Shown here: positions 30,345-44,215 of the stretch, piece after piece | How positions within the stretch are numbered: position 1 is the first letter of the stretch | Layout: every line of letters begins with the position of its first letter | NCBI GenBank assembly: GCA_021613535.1 | Contig: CP075492.1 | Coordinates: 16,306,001-16,370,000, forward strand | Source: Adineta vaga | Taxonomy: Eukaryota; Animalia; Rotifera | DNA length: 64,000 bases | Reading direction: 5' to 3' | The notes under the pieces: model-generated | Told to the model about the DNA's origin: nothing | What the model saw: only the letters and a program-made list of their open reading frames with translations | Database searches by the model: none | Made by a program: the position numbers and the translations under genes

Positions 30345-31687
30345 TTATTTCGATGTTTTCGTACAATAAGATTTAAAAACAGAATTAAAGAGTTGTTCAA
30401 GTCGATTCATATCCACATTGACATTGTCTTGCTCATCAACTGTATTCGGTAAAATCCAATAGGATTGATTGAGTAATTGTGATTGTATATAATAACTATA
30501 ACCAACACATGGTCGAAATTGATTTGGATCAAACATCGAACAAACAATGGGTAAAGAACTTTTATTCGATTTATAAGGCATTATTTCGATAATAGTTGTT
30601 CCAGATGGAGCAAAATTGATATTGGATAGAGCTCCACCATGTATACCAAAAATGAGACGAGCATTGGAAAATAATTCGATTTGTTTTCCAATATGATCAT
30701 CTTGTTTGGAATGATCATATTGTACATAAGTAAGTGAATGTTTTATGGCATATCTACGAAGAAGTTCAATAACGGAATTGTCATTGAGAATCAGACGACC
30801 ATGATTTTTTGCATTATTTGCTGTACGTTGAACATATATCAGTAGATTTGGTTTCGATTTTGGAAGGTTTACTAAAGACCAATACATCGCACGAGCATTT
30901 TGCCAAAGACGAGGATGAATACCTGGTGTTCGACATGGATTTATCAAAAGATGCGCACCAACTTTCATTGGACGATTATAATGAATAATTCGATGTGATT
31001 CATTTACACCTGTAATCATATTCAAAATCAATCGTCTATAAACATGCAGTAGAACTTACCAAGTAAATTCCATATTTCTTTGACAGACCGATCAAATTGA
31101 ATACCTTTTAAAAGCAATACTTTAGCATTCGGATACTGATCTAAATAGTGTCGAGAATGGGTCAATTTTGGTCCAATTCCATCGAGAAAATGCTGAAAAC
31201 TCCAACCATCGGGTACTGTATAGATAATGGCTTGATCATAAACGACTGAAACGTGATTCTTTGATGTAAATATTCGTCGAAGAGCTGTTTCATCATAGTT
31301 ATAACCACAAGCATCATTATAATAAACACCATTCTCTACTAAAGCCAGATGAATATTCAAATGTTCTTTGGAATCATTGTGGAAGAACCCATTTGTTTCA
31401 CAATTCCGATGCAAACATTGTTGTGAATATTGTCGATAATGAGTTGTATTCAAAAACCAATTACGTGTTTCATTATCAAAAAAATTAGGTAAACCGATTG
31501 TGAAAGGTTCAAACGCAGATGAGATTTGTTTGAATTTAGAATCTTTAGATGAGAATAAATCTTCTGTTTATCTCGAAATAGATGCATGATTTAGATACCA
31601 AAATAGAAAACAAATTTGATAAATAATAATAATTGATATAACACTAATATACACAGATTTCAATAAATGAATTCGATAAAGTTTCAT
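30345..31687 (-). CDS. Glycosyltransferase family 61 (DUF563), type II membrane protein, 3 exons
   Basis: N-terminal TM; WSFQHFLD; QIELFSNARLIFGIHGGALSNINFAPSGTTIIEI signature. Confidence 0.85.
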
Positions 31688-33390
31688 CTTTGTTATCCAT
31701 AAAGTAAATCGATATAAAAAGATTGATTATGATAGATCATTTCATTATTAATATACTTATTATTCGTTCACTAGTAATTATGATATGAAGAACACAAAGC
31801 TTTTACACAGTACAATTTATATTGTGAGATATTCGTATGCTGTTGTATGTGGTATAAGATTTGTCCGCTTTCAAGATAATGATATGTGAAATTAAGTTTA
31901 AGCGAAGTTTTTTTCTTTCTTTTTCATTCTCTACCTCCACACATTCATATCGAACCTCGTGGCAGTTATAAAACAAGAAATACGATCAAATATGGGGCAG
32001 ATCAATATTGTGTAGAGCTTACATGAATAGTGAAGCATAGGTTTAATTTTGATTAGTTTTGTTCGAAAAGAACATGAAAAACTACATTGACTATTGTTAT
32101 TTCTGTCTTAAAAAATCTTTCTTCTTCAAAGACTTATCAAACAATGTTTTCAAGAGGTATTCAAGTCGCAAGCGTCATATCGTATTATAATAAGATAAAT
32201 AATAATTATTTAATGTAAGTCTTTTCCGTAGTAACTACCAGGATAAGAAAATATAACAGCTAATATCCTTAGATTTTTTTATCTTATGGTTCATTTTATA
32301 AATGTGTAAAATTTAAATGATCAAATTCTTTAATAATGTGGTGTTTGATATTGATTTTAAAAGTAATTATTTGGTATCTGCTAAATAGAAAAAACGTGTT
32401 CATGCATACATAACCGCCATGACTTCACGCTGCATTGTAAAAATAAGGATCTATCGATTCGCAACATACGAGAAACCTTTTCATCTCTTTCTTGAAGTGC
32501 GTCATAAATCAAGAAAGGGTTTATATCTTCACCAAGTACAATAAAAAAGGAGTTCTTTATACGTTGCAAATTCATAAATCTTTTTTACGTTTATGAGACC
32601 ATTATAAACGACTTTGTCGTGGGTTGTTGTACACTTCCTTTTTACAGTATAGAAATATGTAATTGTTAAAGCGGTGGATGGATATACATGAGGCTATGCT
32701 CTTAACCCACACACTAAATATAGACTAGAAAATATCATCAGCTATAGACAGTCTCACTTCATACGATAAAAACTAATATTATCAAAAATCAATTCATTTA
32801 ACTCAATTACAAGTGAAAGTGCTTTTTGAAATAAAAAATCAAGATTTTCGAAGAAGAAATCAAATCAGAGATTTTAGTTATTTTATCAGATACAATTACT
32901 CTTTAATTCAATATGGATTTTATTTCAATTAATTTTTCAACTGATAATAATCAAAATTTTGTTGAGATTGATTGAGTATGTAATTTCATTTTATTTGAAC
33001 TAACTGAAAAAGTATTCTTGACTTATAATTATCAACTAGGAACTATTTTACAACTAAAACAAATGTTTCGCAGTTGTTTAACTATTAAATATCATACTGT
33101 AATTTGTAACAAGACCTATAGATATGAAAAGTGGAAGTAGTATTTCATGATTTATCACGTATTTTGAATAACATTTCGTCCAAGATTCGTTGCCATTTAT
33201 AATACATAAGGTTGTTTTATGCTTTTTTTCTTATTCATTTTAATGATTAAATTTGATATTTGAGAAGATACTTGCTTGATGAGAGATAGAAAATGACGTG
33301 GGAAATTGATAACCTTTTTTCAAATTAAATATCTGATATAATATAAAAACACAGTTCTTCAACAGAAAAATAAAGGTTAGTTTTATAATC

Positions 33391-34106
33391 ATGGATAATC
33401 GTCGTTTACGTTCTATTATTTTCAAACTTCGACATCGTCTCAGTAATAACGATCGAAAACGTCTTCAATTCTATCTTGGTAATCATATTTTACAAAGAAT
33501 TCAAGACTATCCGACAATTGCTGGAACTCTGAATCTTATTGGATCTCTTCTTGATAAAAATGAAATTAATGATAAAGATCTCAGTTATCTAATCAATGCA
33601 TTTGATGAAATTCATTGTTGTGATGCTGCAAACTTCTTGAGAGGTAAACTCATTATTTTTGTTTAAAACAGATTGCTATAATCACTATGTTTAGAGTATC
33701 GAAACCAAAATCGTGCAAATCCATCAATACACAATCTATCAAAAAGTATGCCACCTCTCTTTTGGAACCATCCACAATCGAGTAAGTGATCAGCGAAATC
33801 ATTTGATATTCTGATTTCATATCAACTTAAATTTAGTTTCTCGTCGTTGTGATGATAAGAATTATAATGAAGCAACGATCAGACATAAGATGAAATTGCT
33901 GGAAAAATGTATCTTATTTTTCGTTCTATTATTTATGGTTATAAATACAGAATTATTATTTTTCTCTCTTTGGAACAATATTCAATTTCGTCAATTAGAA
34001 GAAGAACATCTTCAATTTACGAAAATGATAAAAGTAATAAAAACTAAACAAAATGAGAATGCGGTAAACTTAAATCAATCGGAAAGCAAATTGGAAAATC
34101 TCGGAA
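33391..34106 (+). CDS. Death effector domain (DED) + linker + TM + coiled coil; probable 5' exons of the TPR gene
   Basis: DED-like LRSIIFKL..LS..DRKRLQFYL..LNL...L....I...DLSYL..AF..I.C.DAA..L. Introns 33644-33694 and 33782-33836 keep the frame into CILFFVLLFMVI...; donor GTAAGA at 34107. Confidence 0.75.
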
Positions 34107-35168
34107 GTAAGAGTGTGCTTCACCTTTCTGTCTAAGAATATATATCCTAATCATCTCACTGTGTTACCGTCGAGTCCTCTGATAGACTAACCGTTCGGAA
34201 AAATAGCTTCTCCATATACATCATCATTGCCCTTAAGAAACTCTTATTTTAGATCAACACTTCTAGAAATTTCAAAGTGAATTATATATGAATCTAGATT
34301 TACCGTGGAAGAATTTTTTAAACAGTGGTTTTATAAAACCTATCCGTGCTATTTTTAATTGGAAATTAAATCGAAATCCATATATCAGAGTTTCAGTTCT
34401 AATCTCGACACATATTCGTGCAGGAAGTTCCGAGAACAGTGGATCATAATCAATTAACTTTATACCGAATAAAAACGATTGGAATTTTAATGTAGCTTGA
34501 AAGATTTGTAAGGTAGAAAAGTCGATTCCAACGCAACTAAACTCGCGGTTTCTAATGTATCATTTCCAATCAAGAATTCAATTAAGACATCATCGTGAGT
34601 GCACTATGACTTTTGAGACTCAAAAAAAAACTATCGGATAGATATAAATTCATCGTGTTTCTATAATATGCTTGGCGTTGATCGAGATAAGCTCAATTCA
34701 TGTTTTTAAATCGAAAACAAAAAAAAACGGAATATGAGTTAGCCTAGTAAAATTATTCTCCACACCTAAAGTAAATTCTATCGAAATATGCCAACTTAAA
34801 TCTACAAAACTGAAATCCCACTTCATAGAACATATCTGAAGTTCCGAAACGTATCAAATTTCCCTTTCCATGTCCGGAAATGTTTTCTATTTTTTATAAA
34901 CTCCATCTTTTTTACAGTTAAAATGTCAATATCAGAGTCTGACACCATGTCAACATATAATTCATTGTTAAGAACAAATCCGATGTAACTACACAATGAT
35001 AAAACCGCTTGAAAACTTCTTTTACACACAACATTCTTTAATAAAACTGCCTATCCGCTTATAACATTTCACACTGAAAGTGAATTCAAAACACATTCCC
35101 ATTTTCTACGCATCAACCTTCATTTTTATATGTAGATCATCACTTTCACTATTACGTTTTCTTCTTAG

Positions 35169-38100
35169 TTTATGCAGCGATGAGACAAAACTCAGCAATA
35201 ATTTCCGACTATCGCAAAATAAACGGGATGTCAGACACACTTTCTCCTTTCGATGATTGGAGTTTAAGCATCACTTACGGAAACATTGCTTCAACATACA
35301 TTAAAATGGGACTATATGAAAGAGCCCTCGAAAACTACAACAATGCTCTTGACGTTCAAAAGAAATCTCTTCCTTCCAACCATGCCGACATAGCCGCCAG
35401 TTACAACAATATAGGAGTCGTGTATGCCGATATGGGAGCGTATTCAAGAGCACTAGAAAACTACGAGAAAGCTCTCGAGATTCGACAGAAGTCTCTTCCT
35501 TCTGATCATTCTGACTTAGTCGTCAGTCATAGCAACATAGGTGCTCTGTATTTCGCTTTGGGAGACCAATTTAGAGCTCTAGAAACCTTAAGCAGAGCCC
35601 TCGAAATTCAACAGAAATCTCTTCCGTCGGGCCATCCTAACTTAGCCACAACTTACAACAACATCGGTTTGAGCTACAACGCCTTGAAAAACTATCCAAG
35701 AGCGCTTGAAAATCTGAATAATGCACTCGAGATTCGAAAAAAATCTCTTCCTTCGAATCATCCTGATCTAGCCAAAAGTTACAACAACATCGGCTTGGTC
35801 TACTACGACTTGGGAGAACATTCAACAGCGCTTGAAAACTACAAAAAGGCACTCGTAATTCGACAAAAATCTCTTCCGCCCAATCATCCTCACTTGGCGA
35901 CAAGTTACAACAACATTGGTTCCGTCTACTACCATTTAAGAGACCATTTAAGAGTGCTTGAAAACTACAACAAAGCCTTCGAGATTCAAAAGAAATCTCT
36001 TCATTCGAATCATCCTGCCATAGCCAGAGGTTACAGCAACATCGGTTCGGTGTACTACGACTTGAGGAAACATTCAATAGCGCTTGAACACTACCAAAAT
36101 GCACTTCAGATTCAAAAGAAATCTCTTCCTTCCGATCATCCGGACATAGCCAAAACTTACTGCCACATAGGTTTGGTATACAATCAATTGGGAGAACATT
36201 CAAGAGCGCTTGAACACTATGAGAAAGCACTCCAGATCCAACAGAAATCTCTCCTCTCTCATCATCCTGACCTAGCTGCTACTTACAACAACATCGGTTT
36301 AGTGTACAACCATCGCGGAGACCATTCAAGAGCACTTGAAAACTACAACAAGGCACTCACGATTCGACAGAAATCCCTTCATTCCGAGCATCCTGACTTA
36401 GCCGCCACTTACAACAGCATTGGATCCGTGTATTATAAGATAGGAGACCACTCAAGAGCTCTTGAAAACTACAACAAGACACTTGAAATTCAACAGAAAT
36501 CTCTCGCTTCTGATCATCCTGACTTAGCCAAAACTTACAACAACATCGGAGTATTGTACAATCACCTGCGAGAACATTCGAAAGCCCTTGAAAACTACAA
36601 TAAGGCATTGGCAATACAACAGACGTCTCTTTCTTCGGACCATCCCGATTTAGCCGCCACTTATAGTAACATCGGTTGGATCTACTATGGCTTGGGAGAA
36701 CATTCGAGCGCTCTTGATAACTACAAGAAGGCACTAGAGATTCGACAAAAATCTCTTCCTTCCGATCATGCTGACTTAGCTACCACTTACAACAACATCG
36801 GTTTGGTGCACAACCAATTAGGAGAGCATTCAAGAGCGCTTGAACACTATGAGAAAGCACTCCAGATTCAACAGAAATCTCTCCTCTCTCATCATCCTGA
36901 CCTAGCTGCTACTTACAACAACATCGGTTTGGTGCACAACCAATTAGGAGACCATTCAAGAGCGCTTGAAAACTACAACAGGGCACTCACGATTCAACAG
37001 AAATCCCTTCATTCCGAGCATCCTCACTTAGCCACCACTTACAACAGCATCGGATCGGTGTATTATAGTACGGGAGACCATTCAAGAGCGCTTGAAAACT
37101 ACGAGAAGGCACTCGAGATTGAACAAAAGTCTCTTCCATCCGATCATCCTAACCTAGCTGCCACTTACAATAACATCGGTTTGGTGTACAATCAACTCGG
37201 AGACCATTCAAGAGCTCTTGAAAATTATAACAAAACCCTCCAGATTCAACAGAAATCTCTTCCTTCCGATCATCCCGGTTTCGCCGCCACTTATAATAAT
37301 ATTGGATTAGTCTACTACGACTTGGGAAAACATTCAACAGCGCTTGAAAACTGGATGAAGGCACTGGCAATTCGACAAAAATCTCTTCCTTCTGATCATC
37401 CTGACCTGGCCAAAAGTTACAACAACATTGGATTATTGTACAATCGCCTGGGGGAACATTCAAAAGCGGTTGAAAACTACCGGAATGCACTCGTGATCCG
37501 ACAAAAATCGCTTTCACCGAATCATCAAGAATTAGCCGCAATTTACAACAACATTGGCTCCGTGCATTTTGAGACGCTATATTATTCGAGAGCTCTTGAA
37601 AATTACAACTGGACACTGAAAACTCGGCAAAAATATCTTCCTTCCAATCACTCGGACATAGCCAAAAGTTACAACAACATCGGTTCGGCATACTACAAGT
37701 TGGGAGAACATTCAAGAGCGCTTGAAAACTACTACAAGGCACTGGATATTCAGCAGAAATCCCTTTCTTCTAATCACTCTGACTTAGGCGCAAGCTACAA
37801 CAACATCGGCTCCGTGTATTTTAAGACAGGAGACCATTCGAGAGCCCTTGAAAACTACTACAAGGCACTGGAGATTCAACAGAAATGTCTTCCTCCTCAG
37901 CATCCTGACTTAGTCGCCACTTACAAGAACATCGGCACTGTGTATCATACTACAGGAGACCATTTAAGAGCTCTTGAAAAGTACAAGGAGGCGCTCGAGA
38001 GTCAAAAGAAATATTTTCCTTCTAATCATCCTGAGATAGCTAAAAGTTACAACAACATCGCTTCGATGTACTACGACTTGGGAGAATATTCAACAGCTCT

Positions 38101-38884
38101 CGAAAACTACAATAGAGTACTCGAGGTTCAACTGAAATATCTTCCACCCACTCATCCTGACTTAGTCGCGAGTTACAAGAACATCGGCACTGTGTATCAT
38201 ATCACAGGAGACCATTTAAGAGCTCTTGAAAACTACAATAGAGTACTCGAGGTTCAACTGAGTTATCTTCCACCCACTCATCCCGATCTGGCCGCCAGTT
38301 ACCGAGATAAAGGTGTCGTGTATTCTGATATGGGCCATAAATTCAGAGCTCTCGAAAACTACAACAAGACACTGAAGATTCAACAGAAATCTCTTTCTCC
38401 CATTCATCCTGATTTAGCTAAAAGTTACATGCTCATCGGTTTGGTATACAAGAATTTAGGAGAACATTCAAAAGCGCTTGAAAACTACAAGAGGGCACTG
38501 GAGATACAAGAGAAATCTGTTCCGCCCATTCACCCTGACTTAGCTAATAGTTATCTGCTTATCGGTTGGGTTTACGATCATTTGGGCGAGTATCCAAGAG
38601 CCCTAGAAAACTACAAGAAAGCACTCGAGAGTCAAAAGAAATATTTGCCTTCTAATCATCCCGAGATAGCTAAAAGTTACAACAACATCGCTGCGGTGTA
38701 CTACGACTTGGGAGAATATTCAACAGCACTCGAAAACTACAACAAGGCTCTCGCGATTCGACAAAAATCTCTTCCTTCCAATCAACGCGACTTAGCCAAC
38801 ACTTACAGCAACATAGGTAACTCGTATCCAAAGTTAACAGATCACTCGAAAACTGATATGGGTGTTGGTGTGAATGATGAATAA
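35169..38884 (+). CDS. Array of ~28 42-aa TPR repeats (kinesin-light-chain/NPHP3-type)
   Basis: 126-bp periodic unit HPDLA.xYNNIG.VY..LGEHSRALENY.KAL.I.QKSLPS; splice acceptor TTCTTAG at 35162-35168. Confidence 0.95.
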
Positions 38885-40651: not shown

Positions 40652-41823
40652 ATGTCGTTTCTATATACCGTGGTTGGATTTCTGAAAAAATTAGTCTTAT
40701 TTATTTTAATTGTTTCAATTGCTATTCCTCTGCGATATGGTTCAATAGATCCAAAATATCTTTTTATTCGTTTATTACACTCAACATTATCATTGAAATA
40801 CTCGATGATATCAGATCAAGCTCGACCAACACTTAGTGCAAATTATCGAGCTTTCGAGAATATGTTGCGAATGATGCCATTTCCAAAACTTGATCCATCA
40901 GCAGATCCACTTACTGTAATCAAAGAAATGCGTTCCTCTTTCGACATGAATTCGATAACTCCAAAACCATCTCAATGTCAAATCGATAAAGAAGTATTTG
41001 AATACGACGAACATGTAGTTGATGCATATTGGGTTAATTATCCTCCAAAAAACATTCAAAGACATTCTGATAAAATATTACTCTACTTTCATGGTGGAGG
41101 ATATTTTTTGGGTAATATTAATAGTGAGAAGTGATTAACTAATGTATGGCAAAATCTAAGGAATTGTTTTCTGCTCTAATAGGCTATAGTGGATATGAAT
41201 GTCATCTCTCTGAACTTTTTAACGTAACTATACTTCATTTGGAATATCGACTTTGTCCTGAACACTCATTACCTGCAGCTGTTGATGATGCAGTTGCACT
41301 TTATCGTGCTCTTCTTCGTCAGAACATTTCCTCATCTCAACTGATGATAATGGGCGAGTCGGCTGGTGGTGGTCTTGTTTTATTATCTTTACAAGCTCTA
41401 CTCGCTCACCAATTACCTGTTCCTCGTGGTGTTATTGTTCTATCACCATTCACTGATCTTTCAATGTCTGGTGAGAGTTATATACGTAATCAGCATACTG
41501 ATATATCACCTCAGTTTGATAAGAATTGGTATGTAGCACTTTTATTGGGTTCCAATCATACTCAATTGTCTCTTGATGATTCTCGGTTTAGTCCTTTGTT
41601 TGGTTCATTCAAAGGATTTCCACCAATGTATATCAATGTGGGAACGGCAGAAAAAATGGAAGATGATTCAAGACGAGTGTGGAAGAAAGCTATAGACGTC
41701 GATGTTGATGTAACATTTGAAGAAGGTTTACATATGACACATATATATCCTGCATTTTTTCTTTATTATTCGGAAGCACGAAATACACTTGATAATATTA
41801 ACAAATGGATACAGAAAATTTAA
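40652..41823 (+). CDS. Alpha/beta hydrolase, HSL (Abhydrolase_3) family, 2 exons
   Basis: YFHGGGY oxyanion motif, EYRLCPEH, GESAGG nucleophile elbow; intron 41124-41182; N-terminal hydrophobic anchor. Confidence 0.92.
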
Positions 41824-41929: not shown

Positions 41930-44215
41930 GTAGGTCGAGGAGGTGTTGAGATTATAAAACTTTGCCATTCGTATCAGACCAAAAATAAGACATGTGTTGC
42001 TTATAAATAAGATTTTCTATTATAAAAAGAATGAAAAACATGTCACTAAGCTGATTTTTATCATCGGTAACTGTATAATTAATCGCGTCATGAGAATGGG
42101 TGCCAATCAGAAGCTCTTTCGTGTTTTGTATACTCAGTAAAAAAACTGGTTGAAGCAAAGAATACGATGACAATGGCTGCAGCAAATGAAAGAGTAGTCA
42201 TCGCATGCTACCATAGAACAGAAATCTTCGTCTAAAGAAAAACACACATCATGGACACTATCAAAATGACCAGGATCTTTTGACGTATAGCCACTCGAAT
42301 ACCAAGAATATTTGATCAAAGGCGAGAATGTTTTAGCTGATAGTTGGTTATGTATCAAAGAATGCATTTTTAAAATGCAGTTTCTAGAACAGATGTCAAT
42401 GTTTATTTGATCAATGGCCGCGCGATCATAAATTTTTTGTTTGAAATATTTCCATTGTCGAAAAAAATAACGATCCAACGGTTGAATATCACCGGTTGTT
42501 TTTGGTGGAATTTGCATTTGCTTACAAGTGATATTTTCAACGAAAATATCATCATAAATGCTGGAATCAGTCTGACCTGACCAGGAGTCCAGCAGCAGTA
42601 AACAATCTTCAGAAACCGATGGACTTAGAACATTTTCAGCCCAGTACTGAATATGTGTTTTACTCAGTTTTCCGCTCTTACTGCAGGAGACATGAATATT
42701 ACTCGCTTGATAGATTGATTGTTTAATACGCGGTCCAAGTTTTCCTGTAGGCTCTTGTAAACATATAAAAACCGGATCAATTAATTCTCCAGCCATACTA
42801 ATGATCGGCATAATTGTGTATGAATGAGTAACAGCATTCGTTGACTTGACGCGGCCTCTTATTATTTTTTCACCGGTTGTTGCCAGAGTCCGTGTTGATG
42901 GATTATCATAACTGAAAGATCAAAAGCGCTATTTTCTATTTAATTTCCTTCCATTCGTAAACAACGTACTTGAAACTGCTTTGATCGCTATTCAATATAT
43001 GATTTTCAGCATAATTCGAAATGGTATTTCTTACTGTTTGGACAAAATTTTCGGCGGATTTCAATATTTTATCTCGATCTTCCAAATGATTTTTGGTTAC
43101 CAGCTTTGTTACTTTTTTTGATGAAATGTGATGGCGATGTTTAAAGTTAAATATCCAATGATGAGATGCTGTAAAACCAACGATATTTAAATCATGCGCT
43201 TTTTTAATAGCCAGCGCCTTAAATCTGAATCGTGTATTAGTAGACAACATTGTCGAGAACGAATAAATTCCGCATAAACAAAGTCATCGACGCGTTGAAG
43301 TTTTTGTGTTTTTGTACCTTGAACATTAACGTATTGCGTGATGCGGCGTAATTGTTCTTTATGTTTTATTTGTTTATATCGTCTACGTATTGAATGAAAA
43401 GTATGGTTTTCTGAATATTCTACAATGGCACACATTGTATCATAAGAATATCTAATACCATCGACGTTTGAAGCAACATCATTTTTATCTTCTTCTTGAT
43501 AATCAGCACTGCAATCGTTATATTCAGCAAAATCCAATGTTACAATATGGTCGACTAGGAGTTCTGCTGAATTTAATAGTTGATTAAACAACAGAAACAG
43601 CTGGTCCGCCAACTCATGATCTTTGGATGATGGTTCACTTTGAACGAGTTCTGGATATTTTTGACGCACCAGATTGTTAAACATGTAAAGAATATTGTTA
43701 ACCTTAATCATATTTGCGTTGGAAACACGATAATGTATCACGTTAGAGATTGTAAAGGTTATCGCATGTTTTATTTAAACCAAAAGCAGTCTATTTATAG
43801 GGCGAAAGGACGAACGAACGAATATATAAATACAAAAGAGATGGATATCATGAGAACGAAGAAATAGTGATAACAGAGGCCTAGAGAAGAAAGCTTGAAT
43901 ATACAGAGATACAGAATATATATAGTTAGTATACGAGATCTATGGTGATGTAGTGAAAACACAGAGAACAGATAAATCGAACGGGATATAATAATACCTA
44001 GCGAAAAAATAAACTAGAACTTTTAAAAACTCTAAAGAAAAAATCTATGTGGCAAGGTATATGTGTCAATTTCTTGGAAAATGTTTTGGCTATAATTTTT
44101 TATTGCAGCAGCCGTAGCCGCTAATTGTTTCATACCTGAGATAGGTATACTTGACTTAACAAACCCACATTATTTTCATTGAAATCCCAGGGACACACCT
44201 GGGGACCTTCCCTTG
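41930..44215 (-). mobile_element. Tc4/Tc5-like (pogo-related) DNA transposon, defective; left end approximate
   Basis: Terminus CAAGGGAAGGTCC read inward from 44215, flanked by TAA. Internal transposase. No matching left TIR found. Confidence 0.8.
42134..43741 (-). pseudogene. DD37D transposase with CENP-B-type HTH and Tc5-type C-terminal Cys domain
   Basis: FTASHHWIFNFK HTH; SDQ, LLDSW and QPLD aspartates (37-aa spacing); C..C..FICC.HC...LCF tail. Frameshift at ~43210; intron 42912-42969. Confidence 0.88.

Follow-up and report, generated by a model that had tools for sequence, protein, structure and literature searches.

A candidate DED-membrane-TPR gene from the bdelloid rotifer Adineta vaga, probably one of a family with variable C-terminal modules

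Where does a gene for a death effector domain (DED) and a membrane helix end on chromosome 3 of the bdelloid rotifer Adineta vaga? The question is raised by positions 33391-38884 of a 64,000-nt stretch (A. vaga AV20, chromosome 3, 16,306,001-16,370,000; assembly of 100.8 Mb in six contigs, 30% G+C), the whole of which we call the window. Here, three short exons, which encode a DED-type domain, a linker, and a membrane helix plus stalk, are followed on the same strand by a long open reading frame (ORF) of tetratricopeptide repeats (TPR), and an earlier reading of the letters alone (the sequence-only reading) had joined them into one protein. Our analysis leans the same way: the two halves would make up one fused DED-membrane-TPR gene of ~1441 aa, a reading that we hold to be fairly probable. 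The gene is probably a member of a rotifer family, not previously described, of at least 53 members that combine a DED and a membrane helix with a variable module.

Exon joins were checked by local translation, and exons were searched singly against databases. Re-reading and translation reproduced every coordinate of the joins proposed by the sequence-only reading, i.e. the 51- and 55-nt phase-1 introns, as well as its phase-1 donor at 34107 and the two frame-restoring acceptors ending at 35168 and 35177. The gene would be organized as follows:

33391-33643 (+), exon 1, 253 nt: start codon and death-fold domain, DED-like; ends in phase 1
33644-33694 (+), intron 1, 51 nt: GTAAAC..TTTAG, phase 1; same intron in GenBank model UJR11945.1
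33695-33781 (+), exon 2, 87 nt: 29-codon linker, weakly conserved among paralogues; ends in phase 1
33782-33836 (+), intron 2, 55 nt: GTAAGT..TTTAG, phase 1; from the mapping of UJR11945.1
33837-34106 (+), exon 3: membrane helix (33908-33973) preceded by a basic flank, then a helical stalk, ~44 residues long; ends at a phase-1 donor
34107-35168 (+), putative intron 3, 1062 nt: GTAAGA..TCTTAG, phase 1; from splice-site conservation, a candidate for this copy
34267-34449 (+), alternative terminal exon of the GenBank model, reached from a phase-0 donor at 34034
35169-38884 (+), putative exon 4: short lead-in, 28 TPR units (35264-38791), a partial 29th unit and stop codon (38882-38884)

Translation of the joined exons 1 to 3 gave an open frame of 203 codons with canonical phase-1 junctions throughout, ending at the phase-1 donor A/GTAAGA (34106/34107; the slash marks the splice site). 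Left unspliced at 34107, this frame reaches a stop at 34133-34135, which would yield a product of 212 aa. On the other side, the acceptors TAG (35166-35168), which is preceded by a tract of 79% pyrimidines, and CAG (35175-35177) each restore the frame of ORF 35180-38884 in phase 1. Use of the TAG acceptor results in a joined coding length of 4323 nt, or 1441 codons.

Much of the evidence on the connection between the two halves came from paralogues, whose loci are numbered here with an L. Compared with the A. vaga genome, the DED exon gave 53 matches, and the downstream flank (8.5 kb) was seen for 20 of the 52 matches other than the window. A same-strand TPR array lies directly downstream of the DED-membrane exons in nine of these 20 loci (10 of 21 with the window), and an opposite-strand array in none of the 20; that the two stand together on one strand is not due to chance. 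In a maximum-likelihood tree of DED exons, the window copy falls into a clade of nine (support 100/97) that consists of eight TPR-linked copies, with proposed third introns of 288 to ~3560 nt, and one recent partial duplicate. The tree shows that DED and TPR linkage were co-inherited, i.e. that the linkage labels are shared by descent and do not reflect independent events.

The splice sites of the proposed third intron are likewise shared. On the nucleotide alignment, the donor GTAAGA is found at the homologous position in all eight aligned copies (as GTAAAA in L035). The 40 nt past the donor are conserved, yet indels of 1 and 2 nt occur in them, and the stops fall at different places among the eight copies; because of these frame-breaking indels and shifting stops, the sequence after the donor behaves as intron. 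A second donor ~20 nt past 34107, which had been suspected from an apparently conserved peptide, was rejected on account of the same frame-breaking indels within conserved intron sequence. At the other end, the phase-1 acceptor ttag/TTTAT before the TPR frame is common to the window, L032, L033, L034 and L035, with a variant (ttag/TCTAT) at the same place and in the same phase in L036, and protein-level similarity among the TPR copies starts exactly at this acceptor. The first in-frame ATG of L032, L034, L035 and L036 lies 18 to 46 codons into the TPR exon, within or after the first repeat; with no start codon near the acceptor, these TPR frames therefore need an upstream exon. The implied third intron varies widely in length, from 74 nt in L042, 169 or 196 nt in L048 and 288 nt in L036 to 1007 nt in L032, 1062 nt in the window, ~1163 nt in L034 and L035, ~1976 nt in L037 and 3559 nt in L033.

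The exon structure extends to a second species. Exon 1 measures 253 nt and introns 1 and 2 are in phase 1 in all mapped A. vaga models except P0007 (L041), and the Adineta ricciae locus has a first exon of 256 nt and the same intron phases. In A. ricciae, the public model CAF1665586.1 connects the DED to the membrane helix and the TPR by way of three phase-1 introns, which measure 56, 56 and 232 nt. The architecture of DED, membrane helix, stalk and TPR that the sequence-only reading had put forward is present in this genome, where the corresponding intron can shrink to 74 nt in a paralogue, as well as in the A. ricciae model.

Several observations weigh against a single fused gene in the window. 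GenBank models it as UJR11945.1 (I4U23_016123), a protein of 239 aa without TPR, and four sister genes are also modelled short, ending inside the proposed intron. Protein searches with the first 70 and the last 100 residues of the TPR part, and an exact look-up in a collection from which records of this genome seem to be absent, yielded no public protein of the locus. At 1062 nt, this intron is about twenty times longer than the first two introns of family genes (48-62 nt), and an in-frame ATG at 35180, four codons past the acceptor, would permit separate translation of the TPR part. Extracellular exposure of a TPR_12 array, as a fused protein would have it, is unusual; luminal TPR proteins are known, so an extracellular or luminal TPR is not without precedent. 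A comparison by eye of DED and caspase-domain positions across the genome revealed no DED-caspase partner.

Further points against fusion come from L031 (C3:17234793-17244500), a 97% identical partial duplicate of window positions 32720-34535 that lies ~0.9 Mb away on chromosome 3. The duplicate spans the DED-membrane gene and the first 430 nt of the proposed intron; over the next 300 nt identity drops to 69%, after which the similarity stops. Its DED-membrane frame (17.24 Mb) is intact, no TPR is found within 8.5 kb, and the next gene encodes an LDLa/EGF-rich seven-transmembrane protein. The GenBank model of this twin, UJR12209.1, is spliced from the 34107-type donor to a last exon of 17 codons that corresponds to 34397-34449; in the window, 34397-34446 likewise provides 17 codons before a stop, so that the last part of the annotated tail is the terminal exon of the twin. 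A stretch of 90 nt that includes this exon and its stop (34376-34465) is identical in the two copies, while the remaining shared intron differs by ~5%, and an intact AATAAA (34468-34473) stands just 3' of it in both. The identical stretch and the AATAAA fit a real short 3' end; the identity could reflect either such an end or a gene-conversion tract. A short DED-membrane product, made alone or beside a long one, is therefore a real possibility.

On a rival reading there are two genes, one for a DED-membrane-stalk protein of 212-239 aa ending within 34107-34449, which could serve as a DED adaptor or decoy anchored in the membrane, and one for an independent TPR protein starting at ATG 35180. 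We regard this as possible but on balance improbable for the window. The short models of the window gene and its sisters, the TPR-less twin, the identical 90 nt with AATAAA in an otherwise diverged intron and the ATG at 35180 all speak for it. The annotated tails themselves, however, are non-homologous between close paralogues: three other sisters have unrelated tails, one of them an exon of 5 nt, and even the twins are modelled differently. Moreover, the greater part of the tail annotated for the window gene is broken in the twin, where the 43 codons upstream of the shared exon are hit by a 4-nt deletion, a 1-nt insertion and stops. Tails that disagree in this way among close paralogues look like the product of ab initio termination; the mini-exon ends of the models (L032-L037 and the window) are probably annotation artefacts, and the current GenBank models of the family genes are probably truncated. 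Two genes would also have to be reconciled with a donor and a TPR acceptor that are kept across paralogues whose introns are otherwise unalignable, with the sister TPR frames that have no start codon near the acceptor, and with the joint inheritance of DED clade and TPR linkage. A different account accepts that the ancestor was fused but supposes that growth of the intron to 1062 nt uncoupled the halves in this copy, leaving one or both unexpressed or pseudogenic. The intron is indeed far longer than in L042, L048 and L036, a TPR-less partial duplicate exists, and the DED copies of window and twin differ by five non-synonymous and two synonymous changes, although seven differences are too few to judge selection. 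Against decay, no frame is broken anywhere in the 4323 coding nt, the 28 repeats keep perfect register, and four sisters with similar or longer introns keep intact frames and splice sites; we consider it quite improbable. A nested gene or transposon as the cause of the intron length was rejected: apart from the partial duplicate, genome comparison showed 34107-35168 to be single-copy DNA, with no Rfam match and no Pfam match in its small ORFs on either strand.

Returning to the GenBank models, those next to TPR arrays (UJR19634.1, UJR19376.1, UJR34649.1, UJR17793.1 and UJR17822.1) end in non-homologous mini-exons of 5-92 nt, and two of the five bypass the membrane helix via a GTTATA donor.

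What kind of domain does exon 1 encode? The window copy matches the Pfam DED profile PF01335 with 22.8 bits (E 1.1e-4; 33409-33618, profile positions 2-69 of 82), which falls short of the curated cut-off of 35.9 bits. Among 24 aligned paralogue exons, 22 match PF01335 at E≤0.01 (best E 1e-9), and the sole other Pfam match is a marginal one (E 0.008) of a single member to an unrelated family. The genome contains seven DEDs that exceed Pfam's cut-off, three of which match exon 1 directly at E-values of 1e-13 to 1e-17: C4:11115657 (E 1e-17; 39.1 bits to PF01335), C5:16091253 (E 3e-14; 38.7 bits) and C4:14055118 (E 2e-13; 41.1 bits).

An AlphaFold model built from the paralogue alignment is a six-helix bundle (pLDDT 80.2, pTM 0.68). 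Compared with known structures by VIA-align, it matched 59 of 121 chains at Z≥5, and among the matches listed almost all were CARD, DED, DD or PYD. The best match was the CARD of Apaf-1 (Z 8.1; root mean square deviation 3.0; 79 residues aligned), with the DED structures caspase-8/cFLIP and MC159 at Z 6.5-6.9; Z-scores below 13 are not decisive for helical bundles, and differences of ~1 count as ties. The Foldseek list was also made up almost entirely of CARD, DED, DD and PYD, but with poor E-values (≥0.75), and a profile search of solved structures returned no DED and only a marginal match to the CARD of Dronc (E 0.27). A canonical feature of DEDs is the RxDL motif in the last helices. The paralogue alignment contains a nearly invariant C76-x-D78-A79 near the C-terminal helix, in which the Asp is kept and no Arg was seen; going by this family alignment, RxDL seems to be replaced by CxDA.

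We assign the N-terminal domain to the death fold with good confidence. Its assignment to the DED class, made on sequence grounds, is weak for this copy alone and supported at the level of the family; of the DED call in the sequence-only reading, the death fold and the best sequence match stood, while the window copy by itself stays below the PF01335 cut-off. The domain might instead belong to another death-fold class, being CARD-like, in which case its partners would differ. The top structural matches are CARDs, the structure-profile search found a marginal CARD match and no DED, and this copy scores under the Pfam DED cut-off. These points are offset by the DED matches of 22 of the 24 paralogues, by the matches of the exon to genomic DEDs that pass the cut-off and by Z-score gaps that amount to ties, so that we judge a CARD-like domain unlikely. 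In addition, the best DED matches of the genome are three clustered DEDs above Pfam's cut-off at C5:14943574-14948014, two of which lie ~470 nt apart in a tandem-DED-like arrangement.

The membrane helix comprises 22 residues (33908-33973), with a mean Kyte-Doolittle hydropathy of 2.5 in the best 19-residue window. The 15 residues on its N-terminal side include four Lys/Arg and the 15 on its C-terminal side one; a helical charged stalk follows. Because of this charge bias around a single helix, the N-terminus is predicted to be inside. This is consistent with the type II topology of the sequence-only reading, in which the DED would be cytosolic and the stalk and TPR array extracellular or luminal. 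There is no N-terminal signal sequence, the DED beginning at residue 1, and the locus proteins have no TNFR or DD match in Pfam. The ORF 35180-38884 (1234 aa) contains 28 unbroken units, each exactly 42 residues long, plus part of a 29th, and matches Pfam TPR_12 (PF13424) with E 1.2e-251 and 814 bits; the array of 28 repeats counted from the letters alone is thereby confirmed in unbroken register.

Other members carry other modules behind the same three 5' exons. NHL propellers follow them in L038, L039, L041, L049 and L050, jacalin lectins in L043, L044 and L047, and a DM9 domain in L046; in public Adineta models the DED occurs together with GH16, NHL or jacalin, GH16 being found in an A. steineri protein. 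The phase-1 junction between exon 3 and the module is annotated in two public models, the A. ricciae TPR member and the A. vaga jacalin member UJR16795.1, whose introns of 50, 62 and 52 nt are all in phase 1. The proposal that modules are swapped through phase-1 introns holds at the family level: on the same 5' exons, paralogues have NHL, jacalin or DM9, and a public model has GH16. As NHL, jacalin, DM9 and GH16 are typical extracellular binding domains, their position fits the type II topology. One A. ricciae model, CAF1431739.1 (P0076, 1565 aa), combines DED, NHL, ADP-ribosyltransferase (ART) and TPR, and is either a merged model or a further architecture.

How would such a protein compare with known systems? 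Vertebrate death receptors are single-pass proteins with a cytosolic death-fold domain, and their signalling starts with clustering and death-fold oligomerization. The rotifer protein is predicted to share with Fas, TNFR1 and DR4/5 the single membrane pass and the cytosolic death-fold domain. These receptors, however, are type I proteins with a cysteine-rich ectodomain and a DD, and need FADD to reach DED proteins and caspase-8, whereas the rotifer family is predicted to be type II, with a DED-type domain on the receptor itself and TPR, NHL, jacalin, DM9 or GH16 outside. Accordingly, the locus lacks the classical combination of the TNFR superfamily, i.e. type I topology, cysteine-rich ectodomain and cytosolic death domain. 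Drosophila PGRP-LC and mammalian Dectin-1 share the predicted layout, being type II proteins in which a short signalling part lies in the cytosol and the C-terminal sensor outside, but their cytosolic parts carry RHIM-like or hemITAM motifs instead of a death-fold domain. In PGRP-LC, sensor exons are exchanged by alternative splicing, so that one 5' module is joined to several 3' modules; in the rotifer family, as far as seen, the exchange is between paralogous genes and not between isoforms.

The TPR part has its own relatives. The TPR-sensor NLRs of fungi and cnidarians and the rotifer ART-TPR proteins have the same 42-residue repeat of the TPR_12/kinesin-light-chain type in long regular arrays, and the nearest database proteins are rotifer ART-TPR and bacterial CHAT-TPR proteins (45-57% identity). 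Unlike the candidate described here, these proteins are soluble and cytosolic, with NACHT, ART or CHAT effectors and no membrane helix between effector and TPR. The short product, if made, would resemble MAVS in its N-terminal death-fold domain, low-complexity linker and membrane helix; it differs in having a DED-type domain instead of a CARD, and ~44 to 60 residues past the helix where MAVS has a C-terminal anchor, which means that its helix is no tail anchor.

For the fused gene, which remains our preferred reading, the following mode of action can be proposed. The three 5' exons (DED-type domain; linker; membrane helix and stalk) would be spliced to an interchangeable C-terminal module, which in the window would be a 28-unit TPR solenoid reached through an unusually long phase-1 intron. 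Binding of a ligand by the outer module would cluster the protein, and the clustered DEDs would then nucleate assembly with other DED proteins to give a signal for death or defence. Production of a short DED-membrane protein that ends inside the intron may occur too. The receptor role and the immune function are both what we infer for such a protein. Still more tentative, and in our view rather doubtful as a whole, is the wider idea that bdelloids possess at least 53 one-piece type II receptors in which DEDs were combined with exchangeable sensors by phase-1 shuffling and, once clustered by a ligand, would seed filaments without a FADD-like adaptor, the TPR member having in addition a short isoform as regulator or adaptor. 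Regarding possible partners, L048 (C3:3839700-3849539, minus strand) contains a separate caspase-like Peptidase_C14 ORF (C3:3843317-3844029) on the same strand, ~1.5 kb downstream of its DED-membrane-TPR gene and ~4.3 kb from the DED exon; no other DED/caspase neighbourhood was seen.

Bdelloids are asexual, and the way in which these animals resist fungal pathogens is under active study. Soluble adaptors are known to signal through death folds, and so are type I death receptors, which depend on an adaptor to engage DED proteins. If the fused reading is true, DEDs placed directly on type II proteins with lectin, propeller or TPR exteriors would represent a new design of innate immune or death receptor, and the family would be lineage-specific and a clear example of how exons are shuffled through introns of the same phase. 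A literature search found no paper linking bdelloids with death effector domains, and in UniProt some members are automatically labelled as DED domain-containing, with nothing further. It was already known that TPR and NHL genes are expanded in general in A. vaga (PMC3846280), and a study of fungal infection in bdelloids makes no mention of DED, TPR or NHL genes (PMC11258130). What the locus contributes is a candidate TPR member whose putative third intron is long, together with a truncated twin and evidence of gene models that are probably cut short; for genome annotation, it means that the present GenBank models of these genes are probably too short.

The neighbouring genes in the window are of other kinds: an Abhydrolase_3 alpha/beta-hydrolase over two ORFs (40652-41823, +), a fragment of a Tc5/pogo-type DDE transposase (42137-42811, -) and a GT61 glycosyltransferase (30348-31031, -).

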